Below, piece by piece: positions 28,898 to 49,534 of a stretch of 64,000 nt of DNA. How positions within the stretch are numbered: position 1 is the first letter of the stretch; every line of letters starts with the position of its first letter. Below the pieces are notes generated by a model. It saw only the letters and a program-made list of their open reading frames with translations, was not told the DNA's origin and did not search any database. Made by a program: the position numbers and the translations under genes. The DNA lies in the IMG/VR virus record IMGVR_UViG_3300023179_004149, positions 256,935-320,934 of that record; one strand, 5' to 3'.

Positions 28898-29467
28898 TTA
28901 TTTAAGATAGTTATTCAATTCTTTTCTCAGAGCTTCTTTGGTGTTAATACCATTATGCTTCAACATACCAACCAACATATTTATAAGATCGACATAAGCA
29001 TAATCTGGCATATACGCCGACCTCATTATGTTGTAGCTGATATCGGACAACCCGAACTGGGCCTGGTACTGCTTAAACTTCATAAAAGCATAGCGATTTG
29101 CAACATCTTCTATATACTTAAGTTTAGAAGCAACAGATAATGCTCCGTTATTTAGAGCATCAAACCAGATGTTGGTAGCGTGGTCGGTGCCGTACTTACG
29201 AAACTGTAACTGGTGTGCTGATTCGTGGAAGGTGATAAAAACGATGTCCGATAAGCTAACGTGATTATCAGCGATAAAGATATCTCCGTTTTCTTTTGAA
29301 ACACCACCTGCTGGTATATCAAAATGCTTAAACGCTATGTTCTTAGCACCGCACTTCTTAACGTCTTTCAATAAAGCGTTAATTACGTTTGCATGGTTGT
29401 TGTCAGTTAAACCCAACAGCCTCTTCTTAAATGCGGCGATTCCTTTCATTGTTATTATTTTCAACAA
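28898..29467 (-). CDS. HExxH metallopeptidase-like protein
   Basis: FHESAH and IEDVANRYA; true start probably internal (MKGIAA). Confidence 0.55.
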   Translation of the reverse strand: MLKIITMKGIAAFKKRLLGLTDNNHANVINALLKDVKKCGAKNIAFKHFDIPAGGVSKENGDIFIADNHVSLSDIVFITFHESAHQLQFRKYGTDHATNIWFDALNNGALSVASKLKYIEDVANRYAFMKFKQYQAQFGLSDISYNIMRSAYMPDYAYVDLINMLVGMLKHNGINTKEALRKELNNYLK

Positions 29468-45337: not shown

Positions 45338-45481
45338 TTAGTGATGGGGATGTATGGGCTTATCTTTTAACAATTCAATTATTTCAGTAATATGATATGG
45401 TCTAAATTCTGGATGGCCGTCTAATCCAACGTTCATAGAACGATAACCATTCAAAAATCTGTCGTTTGGTTGTGGGTGCAA
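45338..45481 (-). pseudogene. displaced duplicate 3' end of the metallophosphoesterase
   Basis: LHPQPNDRFLNGYRSMNVGLDGHPEFRPYHITEIIELLKDKPIHPHH*; 43 bp identical between 45388-45430 and 46432-46474. Confidence 0.9.
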
Positions 45482-45543: not shown

Positions 45544-46413
45544 ATGAAACAGAGGTTTACACATGAAGAATTAGAATTTTTATTTAGTGAATATCCAACA
45601 AAAGGTATTAAATATTGTGCTGAGTTTTTAAATAGAACTGAAATAAGTATACAACGTAAGGTTAGTAAGCTTAAATTAAAAATAAATGATACATCGAAGA
45701 AAGAACGTCAGCGAATAGCTGGCAAAAATCGTGATGTTTATAATAAAAAACATAATATAAATGAAAATATGTTTTTTATTATAAACGAACCAATTGTCGC
45801 ATATTTCTTAGGTTTATTGTGGTCAGATGGTCATATCATATCAAAAGGTTCGGGTAAGGAGAACTCAATCAAAATCGAAGCTAAAAAAACTGATTTAATC
45901 GAGATCATAGATGATTTAAGCTTATTGGGGAAATGGACTGTTAGTTACAGGAAGCGTCCTGGCCGTCAAGAACAGATGCTAGTATGTACCAGTAATCGAA
46001 AATTAGTTGATTTTTTAGTAGACCACGGATATCTAAATAAAAAAATTGAATCGGCTGATAAAATTTTAAATAAAATACCAGATAAATTAAAACATTATTT
46101 TTTTAGGGGCTTATCGGATGGTGATGGTTGTTTTTACCAAAATATTAAAAATAGATGTACACAATATACAATTCACAGCACATATGAACAGGATTGGTCA
46201 TATGTTGAGATTCTATTTAAATTTTTAAATATAAAATATAATATTCTAAGAATAGATAGGTTATATTCAAAATCGTCAACAATTAGAATAACCGATAAAA
46301 AAGATATTATTAAATTTGGTAATTATATATATTTTGGTGGAAAATTTGGTTTCTCAAGAAAATATATGAAATTTAAAACAATTAATGATGGGTCTGAATT
46401 GGTTTGTCTTTAA
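45544..46413 (+). mobile_element. free-standing LAGLIDADG homing endonuclease
   Basis: AYFLGLLWSDG and FFRGLSDGDG; opposite strand, lower GC, TATTTAT upstream. Confidence 0.9.
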
Positions 46414-46995
46414 GCAATGTTATTATTTCACTAATATGATATGGTCTAAATTCTGGATGGCCGTCTAATCCAACATCCATACTTTTAAACCCATTAATAA
46501 ACCTATCTTTGGGTAACGAGTGGCAGTGTCCGTAAAGCATATACCAACCTTTGTGGCAACCTTCCCATTCCCTGATAGGATAGTGATCCATCACGAACAT
46601 ATCGTTGTCAATTTGAACCACCAATCGGGTCGATACTGATGTGAAACAATTTTTAATGTTATCACGATTCATTTCAATGTGTTTATCGTGGTTGCCCAGA
46701 ACCAGGTGGACTTCATCACAGATAATTCGATCCATAAACAACTTAACATTTTCAAAACCACCAAAAGCAACATCGCCCAGGATGAAGAGCACGTCTTCTT
46801 TCTTTACGTTAGTGTTAATGTTATTGACCAGCGTGTCGTTGTGATGGGTAATTGACTTAAAGTCACGGTCAGCACCCGACTCCCATGAACTCAGGCTCTT
46901 AATAAGGTTTTTGTGGGAATAGTGCGTTACGTGTCCGAGGTAACCCACACATTTCGTGCAGAACCCTCGGACAAATTGGTTTTAAATTTTAACAT
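46382..46995 (-). CDS. calcineurin-like metallophosphoesterase, interrupted by 5 extra nt in the DxH motif
   Basis: MLKFKTNLSEGSARNVWVTSDT* (46995-46927), then HYSHKN...LGDV...GNHD...DHYP...GHCH...DVGLD. Confidence 0.85.
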
Positions 46996-47028
46996 ATGTT
47001 ATTTCTTTTAATTTTATTATTTAAGCCC

Positions 47029-47460
47029 TTAGTTATATTCCTTTAAAGAATTTTTTAAGGACTCACGTTCAAGTATTGTTTTTTTCTTATCATAGTTCTT
47101 CTTACCTCTTGATACGGCGATCTCGCACTTTATTATTCCACGATCATTCAAAAATATTGAAACGGGAACGATGGTCATGTGTTTCTCCAACTTGGATTGT
47201 ATCTTGCGCAACTCCTTCTTATTCAAAAGAAGCTTTTTCAGCCTGTTCGGGTCATGCTCAAAAAACTTATTGTTGCTACGTATAAGAAAGTTAGTTATGA
47301 AGAGTTCATCCTTCACAAAATAACAAAAGGCATCCACAACGCTGGCCTCACCCGCCCTTATCGCTTTCACCTCCGATCCGAGTAATTGGAGTCCCGCATT
47401 ATATTTATCCAGGAATTCGTAATCAAATCTCGCTTTCCTATTCTCAATTAACGTTTTCAT
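47029..47460 (-). CDS. smpB: SsrA-binding protein
   Basis: ENRKARFDY, AGLQLLGSEVKAIR, HDPNR.KKLLL, GKKNYDK. Confidence 0.95.
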   Translation of the reverse strand: MKTLIENRKARFDYEFLDKYNAGLQLLGSEVKAIRAGEASVVDAFCYFVKDELFITNFLIRSNNKFFEHDPNRLKKLLLNKKELRKIQSKLEKHMTIVPVSIFLNDRGIIKCEIAVSRGKKNYDKKKTILERESLKNSLKEYN

Positions 47461-47493
47461 GCTACAAATTTAGACAATATTTTTCAAAAAACA

Positions 47494-47524
47494 AAAAACC
47501 CCACAAAAAAATTGTGGGGTTTTT
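47494..47524 (-). terminator. intrinsic terminator abutting the smpB promoter
   Basis: AAAACCCCACAA/TTGTGGGGTTTT. Confidence 0.75.
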
Positions 47525-47539
47525 CGAGTTATTCGGAGT

Positions 47540-48052
47540 CTACTGCAAATTTTTTAATTTATATAAAGTTGAGTTAATTAACTCAACAATTGTATCTATT
47601 TGGTTTTGGATGTACGATTCTTTAATGCTTGATCTGTTCATCTCAATTAAACCTTCCAGTTCGGTAAAATAAGCTATCAAATCTTGTACAGAGGTAAAAT
47701 CTTTATATTCTATTGATTTATAACCAGTTACAATACTGTATTTACCTTGATAGCTTTCAATTAAGCCATCTAAAAGTTCTTGAATACCAGTATAATATCC
47801 GTTTAAAGCCATATGTGCAGCAAATGAGCCAGCGCCAACTGTCTGTAAGTGGAATATGTGTGCCTGCACTTCTGAACTGAATAATGCGGATACTATCATT
47901 TTAAAGTTATCCATTGCTGGATCCGAACCACCTGGTACGCTCATTGGCATTTCTGGTTGACCAACTATCGGAGTTTCTGGCGTTGGCTGAGTCGGCATTG
48001 GTGTCGGGATGGCGTTTTTTGCCATACCCACTATTTTGTCTTTTAAGTCCAT
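47540..48052 (-). CDS. ferritin/Dps-like four-helix protein (DUF5856-like) with Pro-rich N-terminus
   Basis: QAHIFHLQT, AAHMAL..YY, LIESYQG, IQNQID, TLYKL. Confidence 0.75.
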   Translation of the reverse strand: MDLKDKIVGMAKNAIPTPMPTQPTPETPIVGQPEMPMSVPGGSDPAMDNFKMIVSALFSSEVQAHIFHLQTVGAGSFAAHMALNGYYTGIQELLDGLIESYQGKYSIVTGYKSIEYKDFTSVQDLIAYFTELEGLIEMNRSSIKESYIQNQIDTIVELINSTLYKLKNLQ

Positions 48053-48078
48053 TTTATAAGTTTTATATAAATAGTCTC

Positions 48079-48681
48079 CTATTTATATAAATTCTCATCA
48101 TAAAAAGGCCCATCGACTTTATAGTAAACTTCCCATATGGGTTTTTTTAATAATTCAATCGCTTTTTCAACGTCCGAATCATCCAAACCTGTTTTCTGGC
48201 TGGTTTTGATGAAGTGTTCCCGCTGGTTATACAGCATGTCGGAATCATCATCAAAAATAACATAGTTATCCACCTCAGACTTTTCAGCATACTCTTTCTG
48301 GGTTTTTAATGACCAGTTTATCCTTTGAAATTTATGTTGACGCAACCAATGCTCAATCTCACAACCTCTGGGTATTGTATAACCCGAAATTCCGCCAAAA
48401 TAATCTGTTTTATCCAACAAGTGGCCCGTTATACCTACCTGTGCAAAAAGCTCTCGTAATTCGTCTATTGTTCGGATTAAACGCCATGTTGAACTCAACA
48501 CTATCTCGGCACCAGTTGCATCGGTAATTTTATTCAACTTCGCAACGATACTCGGTGAAAATTCATCATAAGGATAATCTCTGGTTTCTTCACCAGCTTC
48601 AATACGCCGACGGCGCTCAACGTACCAATCGTTACAGTTGAGAACACCGTCGATGTCCAAAAACACAATTTTCTTTTTCAT
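48079..48681 (-). CDS. HAD phosphatase (HAD_SAK_2 RNA-repair type)
   Basis: FLDIDGVLN, VLSSTWR, RGCEIEHWL, YVIFDD. Confidence 0.85.
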   Translation of the reverse strand: MKKKIVFLDIDGVLNCNDWYVERRRRIEAGEETRDYPYDEFSPSIVAKLNKITDATGAEIVLSSTWRLIRTIDELRELFAQVGITGHLLDKTDYFGGISGYTIPRGCEIEHWLRQHKFQRINWSLKTQKEYAEKSEVDNYVIFDDDSDMLYNQREHFIKTSQKTGLDDSDVEKAIELLKKPIWEVYYKVDGPFYDENLYK

Positions 48682-48682
48682 G

Positions 48683-49534
48683 TTAAAGTTTTGAGAATCT
48701 GTTTGCATTTCGCTCAGCGGCTTCTTTCAGATATTCGATAACCGCAGGAACTTCATGTTCCTCGATGTTTTTAATATAAACACCACGCGATGCTCCTTTT
48801 CTTGGATGAAGTATCCAGAGTTGTAGACCAACCCTTGCGTCTGGTTCATCGTAGATGCGCCCGTCAACACAATGTTCGCAATGGCCATATACACCCAGGC
48901 GCTTTGCCCTGGTTTCAATACATATCCACCTGTTGATGGCATCGTGATGATGGATACCTTTAACATGCTGCGCCTGGTTGATAGTTTCAGCTTTCGGCAT
49001 TTCAGGTTTTTCACAGTCAACCCATTTGCGGTCTTTCCATTCACCACTATCATCCATGAACATCCATTGATTACGGTTTTCATCAAAACGATACCATTTG
49101 CCGCCTGGCATAAAATCAGATAAGCGACCCTGCTTAACTAGTTCATCAACCTCGTCTTGGGTGAGCTTATCATGCCATTTATCAGCTGGGTTTGCTTGAT
49201 GACTAAAACCATAAAAATCATTTGATATCTTTAATGTGGCGGGATTTAAACCCTCACCATTACAGTGTGGGCACTCGTGGTTTTCACGATATAGGTTGAA
49301 ATAAAAGTTAACCAACTCGTTGTATTCATCCAACTTGAAATGATCGGCAAAAGTTTTCAACTCAACAGGGGAATCCCAACCCTCACCTTTTTTTTTCCAC
49401 ATGTAATCTTCACCATTACCCCAATGGGGGTAATCTGGATTTTTTTCCAGTAATGCTATTTGCCACGGTTTGGCGTTAAGTTTGTTTAGTGACTTAACGT
49501 CATACTCATCATTCATGTTTGGTACTGTGCGCAT
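48683..49534 (-). CDS. hypothetical protein with split DnaJ-like Zn finger
   Basis: CPHCNGEG and CEHCVDG. Confidence 0.65.
   Translation of the reverse strand: MRTVPNMNDEYDVKSLNKLNAKPWQIALLEKNPDYPHWGNGEDYMWKKKGEGWDSPVELKTFADHFKLDEYNELVNFYFNLYRENHECPHCNGEGLNPATLKISNDFYGFSHQANPADKWHDKLTQDEVDELVKQGRLSDFMPGGKWYRFDENRNQWMFMDDSGEWKDRKWVDCEKPEMPKAETINQAQHVKGIHHHDAINRWICIETRAKRLGVYGHCEHCVDGRIYDEPDARVGLQLWILHPRKGASRGVYIKNIEEHEVPAVIEYLKEAAERNANRFSKL

Follow-up and report, generated by a model that had tools for sequence, protein, structure and literature searches.

The window analysed here is a 64,000-nucleotide (nt) stretch, the final 64 kb (positions 256,935 to 320,934) of the 320,934-bp phage record IMGVR_UViG_3300023179_004149 from IMG/VR (34.5% GC). 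Its minus strand carries a metallophosphoesterase gene that is interrupted inside the metal-binding DxH motif, where the order is ..VWVTSDT-ACG TAA CG-CAC.., so that the gene is split into two open reading frames (ORFs; Table 1). ORF1, with an ATG start at 46995-46993, encodes a surrogate N-terminus that retains the beta-1 and motif I residues VWVTSD of intact homologues. ORF2 is a calcineurin-like metallophosphoesterase (Pfam PF00149/PF12850; phrog_547, E 9e-36). A complete DxH is obtained only if the two ORFs are joined by a hop over the intervening 5 nt, and the joined product then presents the calcineurin-like motif series DxH, GD, GNH(D/E), H and GHxH in order. An earlier note on this DNA, made from the letters alone, had proposed such a hop from an ACG codon over the stop to a second ACG. 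Its coordinates and its 5 nt all check on the minus strand, and the rest of the gene is intact as claimed, the downstream frame being open to 46382 with the metallophosphoesterase motifs.

The 5 extra nt were checked at contig level and are the same in three assemblies, namely the JGI contig, an ENA MEGAHIT contig (L005) 100% identical to the window across 3567 nt, and, for the probable source run, a Logan contig of 16 kb (word depth 18, 0 differences). Exact and degenerate junction searches (TCGGACACGTAACGCACTAT in IMG/VR; TCNGAYACGTAACGCAYTAYTC in JGI metagenomes) matched the window's own contig alone. Run X2, a freshwater metagenome from an independent, earlier sample (2011), contains contigs 100% identical to positions 46372-46699, 46772-46868 and 47163-47336; its depth is low and the hop site falls outside its contigs.

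Table 1. Coordinates of the features at the interrupted metallophosphoesterase locus and of related features of the phage
Feature	Position	Strand	Content or basis
smpB, upstream neighbour	47029..47460	minus	Pfam PF01668, E 3.7e-43
Endonuclease 3' relic, ..IKRNNIC*	46989..47013	minus	last 7 codons and stop (24 nt), directly after smpB
ORF1, surrogate N-terminus	46930..46995	minus	22 codons, MLKFKTNLSEGSARNVWVTSDT; element-borne; last codon is the take-off ACG
5' hairpin, 42 nt	46932..46973	minus	minimum free energy (MFE) -24.5 kcal/mol
Outer 9-bp stem	5' arm TGTCCGAGG 46973-46965; 3' arm CCTCGGACA 46940-46932	minus	sequence
Inner 7-bp helix	46962-46956 pairs with 46950-46944	minus	sequence
Take-off codon ACG	46932-46930	minus	sequence
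In-frame stop TAA, directly 3' of the take-off codon	46927..46929	minus	sequence
Coding gap TAACG, 5 nt	46925..46929	minus	sequence
Proposed landing codon ACG	46927-46925	minus	final three gap bases; shares A with the TAA stop
Resume codon CAC (His of DxH)	46924-46922	minus	followed by TAT TCC CAC
ORF2, metallophosphoesterase body	46382..46924	minus	from the His of DxH to the stop; GD, GNHD and GHxH motifs
Second, different LAGLIDADG homing endonuclease P0002, 289 amino acids	45544..46413	plus	Pfam PF14528, phrog_4645
Displaced, diverged duplicate of the phosphoesterase 3' end	45338..45481	minus	79% nt identity to 46382-46514
Two odd tRNAs (anticodon CUA; 8-nt loop), outside the window	G000:C1 16062-16135 and 29515-29599		tRNA calling

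The closest relatives of the gene are intact. ORF2 is 89% identical at the amino acid level to the intact protein P0004, a second intact relative, P0005, shares 84% identity with the window protein, and these and other close relatives (196-198 amino acids) read ..IWVTSD(I/T/P)HYSHKNL through the motif. At the DNA level the window is 84-90% identical to the intact genes of loci L003 and L007, with homology beginning exactly at 46924, the first base of the His codon, and DNA homology to these two loci is absent upstream of that point as far as smpB. Taken alone, this comparison suggested a frameshift private to this genome, located where two sequences had recombined. In IMG/VR, none of the 80 homologues nearest to the window protein is interrupted, and the same holds for the cultured and GenBank phage homologues inspected (Flavobacterium immuto, Cellulophaga phi17:2, Stenotrophomonas Ps15, Acidovorax ACP17, three faecal 'Bacteriophage sp.' records and LR756504).

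Relatives of the interruption itself were sought with three patterns: the two stem arms of the hairpin that precedes the take-off codon, in IMG/VR; the arms with a stop required; and, regardless of any hairpin, TCN GAY ACN TRA CN CAY followed by H-x-x-H-x-N spacing. The window included, 23 distinct cassettes were recovered from IMG/VR phage contigs of >20 metagenomes, and every one of the 17 loci returned by the hairpin-agnostic pattern is a genuine member with the hairpin. The cassettes share one architecture, in which the hairpin is followed by a Thr codon (ACN), one or two stops within a gap of 5, 6 or 9 nt, a His codon (CAY) and the phosphoesterase body. A stop (TAA, TGA or TAG) follows the take-off codon in 23/23, a count to be read knowing that both search patterns required a stop. 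The 5-nt gaps are TAACG in the window and TAACT, TGACT, TAACA, TGACA or TAATT elsewhere, the 6-nt gaps are TGAACA and TAGACC, and the 9-nt gaps (TAGTAAACA and TAGTGAACT) each hold two tandem stops. Except on two contigs that end too soon, the bodies are open frames of 173-220 codons with the catalytic motifs, and they are mostly only 26-56% identical among cassettes. The stop and gap are thus conserved in relatives, one of the checks proposed in the earlier note, and the interruption is no one-off mutation, a simple inactivating mutation having been listed there as an alternative. The same note had named a gap unique to this genome, together with the lack of a full-length product, as refuting the hop; the exact 5 nt are indeed unique, but equivalent gaps occur in the 22 other cassettes. 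A template-switch mutation was also considered as the sole origin of two window-specific 'insertions' and was rejected, the same arms being found in other phages.

A Thr-to-Thr hop yields S-D-T-H in all gap classes, and locus L164 joined by the hop equals the intact protein P0021 from the Thr onward. As far as sequence can tell, the hop is the only route that would restore D-T-H in every class, because frameshifting does not suit the in-frame classes, readthrough does not suit the 5-nt class, and both leave extra residues between Asp and His; in the window a plain -1 shift would give D-T-V-T-H and break DxH, as had been predicted. The landing codon is ACN in 22/23 cassettes. For gaps of 5 nt, searching with C required as its second base gave 17 loci and searching with C excluded gave 1 real locus, whereas the third base varies (T 13, A 3, G 1). 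This codon-like, wobble-type variation is supportive of re-pairing at the landing site and is not decisive, because the landing codon is historically the resident Thr codon of the target gene.

The origin of the cassette can be read from a pair of empty and filled sites. The body of L164 is 100% DNA-identical to the intact allele P0021 (loci L181 and L182), which reads MKFNSNERNIWFTSDTHYSHKNL, and the filled loci L163 and L164 differ from these empty loci by an insertion of ~985 nt inside the DxH codons. From its 5' end, the filled site consists of the resident N-terminal fragment ..WFTSDTH, then a stop; a 295-amino acid LAGLIDADG homing endonuclease, the stop codon of which overlaps a new start (ATGTTAAAA); a surrogate N-terminus, MLKFKTNTSEASARNLWFTSDT, which contains the hairpin and is followed by ACG TGA; and the resident sequence, which resumes at ACA CAT TAT. 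At its 3' end the element reads ..ACC TCG GAC ACN and one or two stops, directly followed by the resident Thr-His codons. On this comparison of L181 with L163/L164, the take-off codon and the stop came with the element, whereas the landing codon is the resident Thr codon.

The endonuclease of the element matches Pfam LAGLIDADG_1/_3, and a single family of such endonucleases (37-45% identity) lies directly upstream in 7 cassettes (L163/L164, L019, L170, L173, L174, L175 and L029, the last cut by the contig end). The other members, including L166 and L172, sisters of L170, have no adjacent endonuclease. Empty and filled alleles, LAGLIDADG domains and one recurrent target together assign the insertion, on sequence features, to the free-standing LAGLIDADG elements. 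In the window, a 3' relic of the endonuclease overlaps the ORF1 start and has the same residues and the same ATGTTAAAA overlap as the full L163 endonuclease. Homology between the window and L163 starts at 47013; the two cassettes are 88.7% identical in nt, compared with 63% for the bodies. The window is a mosaic, with the breakpoint at the gap, of an L163-like cassette, which is an element relic, and an L003/L007-like body. The cassette is thus identified, from these alignments, as the surviving right end of a ~985-nt LAGLIDADG homing-endonuclease element. The earlier note had weighed a remnant of a deleted mobile insert against the hop; the remnant proved real, a right junction that keeps 7 endonuclease codons, and it is no rival to the hop.

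A distant member of the same endonuclease family (27-35% identity) is found at positions 2050-2919 of L003 (IMGVR_UViG_3300017917_002458), between smpB and an uninterrupted phosphoesterase whose motif is C-S-D-P-H rather than T-S-D-T-H, and a pond-metagenome contig has the same layout. The C-S-D-P-H motif may represent a variant of the target or a cassette-free solution. The 995 nt that replace window positions 46925-47035 in the pond-metagenome relative had been considered as an intron or intein in DxH; this candidate was rejected, L003 showing an endonuclease gene with smpB and an intact gene as its flanks.

In the window the hairpin includes the expected perfect 9-bp stem ending on the take-off codon, the 3' arm comprising the T-S-D codons and the first base of ACG. 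Its predicted folding has a z of -3.95, none of 200 shuffles (0/200) fold as well, and the stem 9-mer occurs once in the 321-kb genome. An equivalent hairpin, 31-66 nt long, is present in 23/23 cassettes, with whole-hairpin MFE of -17.7 to -24 kcal/mol and z of -4 to -7 in the ten that were folded. The same stretch in 49 distinct intact homologues has no hairpin (-4.6 +/- 2.7 kcal/mol, best -10.6). No Rfam 15 covariance model matched window positions 46700-47200 at E <= 1.

Across cassettes the 5' arm is translated in three frames, as LSEG (x-S-E-G), NVRG or SPR. The codons of the 3' arm are nearly fixed (ACC 22/23, TCG 23/23, GAC 21/23), whereas the same positions in 50 intact homologues use many synonymous codons; within their codon families ACC, TCG and GAC account for 20%, 11% and 21% of usage in this genome. 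Covariation was scored by a tool for part of the stem, since MAFFT misaligned the short-loop members, and the pairs were also tabulated with the take-off codon as anchor. Some of the compensatory changes that the earlier note had suggested looking for were seen: G-C is replaced by A-U in L171 and L176 (Asp codon GAT with partner A) and by C-G in L165 (Thr codon ACG with partner C), and G.U replaces A-U in eight cassettes. In the outer stem 94.9% of cells are paired, a figure that falls to 19-49% if the partner is slid. Each cassette has an inner helix of its own sequence and length, which nevertheless always forms, and between the window and L164 this helix shows a compensatory C-G to A-U swap. 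On this comparative evidence the hairpin is under selection as nucleic acid, as judged by a 5' arm translated in three frames, nearly fixed codons in the 3' arm, compensatory changes and variable inner helices. The competing hairpin proposed to span the stop (GTTAC/GTAAC plus GTG/CAC) is present in the window but is not conserved in relatives, and it was rejected as part of the device.

Two cassettes read from the reverse strand in Shine-Dalgarno-using contexts, L043 and L037, have GGAGG/AGGAG shortly before an out-of-frame AUG inside the 5' arm, which could be an internal Shine-Dalgarno-like stimulator or a decoy start. The stem 9-mers recur in two further settings. One is an unrelated, GC-rich hairpin of 42 nt that shares the 9-bp arms, has the loop GCTCAGGGGCAGCGTTTCCGTCAC and lies on small viral contigs adjoining ..GGAGGAAAACGATA (L011, L013, L014, L016, L017, L030, L033, L036, L038, L044 and L049), and the other is a hairpin resembling a terminator, in which the same arms precede a T run, in L015, L023, L028, L035 and L050. 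Both sets probably share the 9-mer by coincidence.

Taken together, the 23 cassettes favour the proposed Thr-to-Thr stop-hop, 5 nt on in the window, that would restore S-D-T-H with the help of a hairpin, and we consider it probable that the interruption is a programmed translational bypass cassette, surviving as the right end of a mobile homing-endonuclease element. A ribosome would translate the 22-codon surrogate ORF, unwinding the hairpin, and would pause once ACG, bound by peptidyl-tRNA(Thr), occupies the P site and the TAA stop the A site. Unpairing of the tRNA would follow, the mRNA would advance by 5 nt, and re-pairing at the overlapping ACG would let decoding resume at CAC, giving one protein with an exact S-D-T-H-Y-S-H (junction peptide NVWVTSDTHYSHK). 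At take-off the 3' arm would span -8 to +1, counted from the P-site codon; the hairpin would therefore be melted, and refolding of this GC-rich hairpin behind the ribosome would be a likely driver of forward movement. For the element, the inserted bases and the synonymous changes in the recoded arm would prevent the junction from becoming an endonuclease target again, with the active site left exact; by analogy with what has been proposed for gene 60 of phage T4, avoidance of self-cleavage is the most likely purpose. The control of enzyme synthesis that the earlier note had proposed found no support in the comparison. In the window, the endonuclease would later have been deleted down to 7 codons and a stop, with the cassette persisting.

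Several points weigh against this reading. The search patterns fixed parts of the motif (TCN GAY ACN, the stop and H-x-x-H-x-N), and counts at those positions carry ascertainment bias. The landing ACN appears to be present partly for historical reasons rather than purely through selection, and one member, L043, has ATT at the landing position. Covariation in the outer stem is thin, with a near-invariant sequence, 3 double changes and 2 cells scored by the tool, and conservation of this stem could stem partly from common descent or from a role at the DNA level. The 3' arm is still inside the ribosome at take-off and moving by 5 nt would restore the stem only in part, so that the hairpin as driver is a model rather than a finding. 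Hopping could be inefficient, and none of the cultured phages among the homologues inspected carries the cassette.

One alternative is that the gap is a junction scar and nothing more: the stop and extra bases would be the tail of the small ORF brought by the element, the phosphoesterase would be inactivated, any full-length protein would come from adventitious, low-level hopping such as occurs at any matched codons on either side of a stop, and the frames would remain open through recent insertion or re-invasion of intact genes. The 100% identity of the L164 body to an intact allele does speak for a very recent insertion there, the exact 5 nt of the window are its own, and the gene is accessory, with uninterrupted copies in all 80 nearest homologues and in every cultured phage examined. 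Recent insertion does not fit the clade of L166, L170 and L172, in which the members have in common an unusual long-loop version of the cassette. Cassette identity in this clade is 70-82% in nt, compared with 74-87% for the body; the cassette is no more similar than the body and was therefore inherited with the gene. Between the L166 and L172 bodies, nonsynonymous divergence (dN) is 0.069 and synonymous divergence (dS) 0.573 (dN/dS 0.12), and in the other two pairs of the clade dS is saturated at dN of 0.13-0.14. Synonymous sites are thus at or near saturation, a pattern that indicates long purifying selection on a gene that, from its sequence, would be unreadable without recoding. Moreover, nearly all of the 23 bodies are open in AT-rich genomes, the two contig-end cases being uncheckable, the surrogate N-terminus keeps its beta-1 and motif I residues, and a 5' arm conserved in three frames would be pointless for a dead gene. 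We therefore regard a mere scar as unlikely.

Other translational routes to a product are less probable still. They comprise -1 frameshifting at the 5-nt gaps and readthrough at the 6-nt gaps, both giving D-T-x-T-H, as well as reinitiation and a two-piece enzyme made of the 22-residue peptide and an N-truncated body. In the window a potential start of the body frame, GTG at 46948, lies 24 nt upstream of the His codon, and an NTG in that place occurs in 12/23 cassettes. Frameshifting of the prfB type, too, involves an upstream duplex and a stop in the A site. The NTG codon, however, derives from a Trp codon, and starting there omits the catalytic Asp; the remaining 11/23, among them every member whose gap is in frame, contain no ATG, GTG or TTG in the body frame from the last stop up to the His codon. 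The site contains no slippery sequence (X XXY YYZ or of the CUU-UGA type), and the shift needed in the window is +5 (equivalent to +2 or -1), whereas the 6- and 9-nt classes need no change of frame. Nor do the cassettes resemble cases of readthrough or stop reassignment, as the window frame is shifted, all three stop codons are used and tandem stops occur in the 9-nt class. Products of these routes would read D-x-x-x-H or be without the Asp, but D-x-H is present in all intact homologues examined.

Loss of the gap from the nucleic acid itself, whether by processing and religation of the RNA or through a genome subpopulation without the gap, is very unlikely. The gene often lies among RNA-repair genes (HAD_SAK_2, PNKP, RNA ligase) and assembler contigs drop minority variants, but all three assemblies show only the interrupted form, there is no Rfam match, and the matched Thr codons and the obligatory stop would have no role in such a process. 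We know of no bacterial or phage mechanism that excises 5-9 nt beside a hairpin. A sequencing or assembly artefact, for which nothing speaks beyond the general prior for metagenome contigs, can practically be discounted given the agreement of three assemblers at a depth of ~18 and the same architecture in 22 other cassettes elsewhere.

A translational bypass cassette of this kind, with a stop after take-off, a matched landing codon, an exact join and a conserved mRNA structure, would by these sequence features belong to the class typified by T4 gene 60 with mobA (Huang et al. 1988; Bonocora et al. 2011; Manning & Atkins, bioRxiv 10.1101/2022.08.31.505936). In both systems a stop follows the take-off codon, the matched landing codon directly precedes the resume codon and mRNA structure is involved. 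Both also have an endonuclease-borne cassette in the metal-binding motif of a phage enzyme, with a replacement coding sequence supplied, and in both the endonuclease is often lost while the bypass is kept ('hit and run') and protection of the junction is plausible. The differences are numerous. The two systems share no sequence homology. The host gene here encodes a metallophosphoesterase and not the large subunit of topoisomerase II, and the endonuclease is of the LAGLIDADG and not the HNH type of MobA. The gap has 5-9 nt instead of 50, take-off is from Thr ACN instead of Gly GGA (GGA or GAY in the gene 60 family), and a large hairpin lies 5' of take-off instead of a stem-loop containing the codon and the stop. 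The gap Shine-Dalgarno element of gene 60 has no counterpart, and the hop is placed 16-32 codons from the start, when the nascent chain is short. The cassette thus falls outside the homologous gene 60/MobA family as delimited by Manning & Atkins, who state that the gene 60 cassette 'remains unique', and from sequence comparison it is best described as analogous to, not homologous with, that system. Forward movement by mRNA refolding, as envisaged here for the hairpin, has been argued for gene 60 (bioRxiv 10.1101/2024.12.09.627546).

Two further phage systems show partial likeness. In the terminase gene of the Streptomyces phage phiHau3, bypass of 10-nt inserts is a candidate event with a proposed 5' stem-loop stimulator (PMC10732093). 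It resembles the present cassette in the short coding gap in a phage gene, the proposed 5' stem-loop and the landing codon near take-off, but the A site there holds a rare UUA and not a stop, sensing of host tRNA has been proposed, the gene is a different one and there is no link with a homing endonuclease. In phage Aeh1 (PMC3045599), the free-standing endonuclease mobE reportedly splits nrdA and supplies new termini. There too, an endonuclease sits inside a conserved enzyme gene whose function is rescued without an intron or intein, but two polypeptides reassemble, whereas here the body lacks its own start and the junction carries a stop and matched codons.

Low-level stop-hops of +5 and +6 in Escherichia coli were reportedly seen by Weiss and co-workers in 1987, and low-level stop-hops also by O'Connor and co-workers in 1989. 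These hops likewise take a peptidyl-tRNA to a matching codon a few bases past a stop, and +5 is the geometry of the window; they differ in being inefficient, in occurring in synthetic or chance contexts without a conserved stimulator, and in not being required for a natural gene. To our knowledge, natural programmed bypassing is known from very few systems, namely T4 gene 60 and its homologues, Magnusiomyces mitochondrial genes and the phiHau3 candidate. No published description of the present cassette turned up in full-text literature searches. With somewhat more reserve than for the window itself, we favour the broader view that the cassettes form an independently evolved, widespread family of natural ribosome-hop cassettes, in which a LAGLIDADG endonuclease brings its own 'translational splice' into DxH.

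The 3' end of the window gene has been reworked by the second endonuclease, P0002, the gene of which overlaps the final 32 nt of the phosphoesterase. This 3' insertion left a displaced copy of the gene's 3' end and brought a surrogate C-terminus that is fused in frame, with no gap. The same 3' arrangement accompanies an uninterrupted gene in the P0006 contigs, where a 289-amino acid LAGLIDADG ORF is found on a 2710-nt contig and the start of a convergent ORF is seen in L008/L009.

The window neighbours at 47029-49534 are smpB, a DUF5856 gene and a gene with the HAD domain known from 'Swiss Army Knife' RNA repair proteins; those in other phages (L010, L169, L172 and L176) are PNKP-like kinase/phosphatases, AAA_33 kinases and RNA ligase. 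A link with smpB, to which the earlier note had drawn attention, found no support, as smpB adjoins the gene only within the window's own clade. The gene context suggests that the phosphoesterase may act on RNA ends, because the gene sits among genes of translation-rescue and RNA-repair type. The phage encodes 31 tRNAs, including tRNA-Thr(UGU) at 29021-29093, an amber-suppressor-like tRNA with anticodon CUA (called 'Pyl' by ARAGORN) and a tRNA of 85 nt, called Thr|Tyr, whose variable arm is long and whose anticodon loop has 8 nt (C-C-U-G-U-A-A-C). The last was considered as a means of 'hopping by expanded anticodon' and was set aside, since it is more likely to be a Tyr-type tRNA with an extra loop base than a Thr tRNA.

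If the bypass reading is correct, a 5' refolding hairpin and an A-site stop would suffice for efficient, obligatory bypassing without the 50-nt gap, the take-off stem-loop and the gap Shine-Dalgarno element of gene 60. With its 23 variants, three gap lengths and simple conserved 5' hairpin, a second family unrelated to gene 60 would provide a minimal and easily mutated model of recoding, in which take-off, forward movement and landing, and especially mRNA refolding at the ribosome exit, could be tested. Gene callers label such genes as truncated or as pseudogenes, and functional enzymes would consequently be missed in the annotation of phage metagenomes. For endonucleases that colonise essential motifs, bypassing would be a general third solution beside introns and inteins, and the pairing of endonuclease and bypass would be a repeatable evolutionary strategy and not an oddity of T4.

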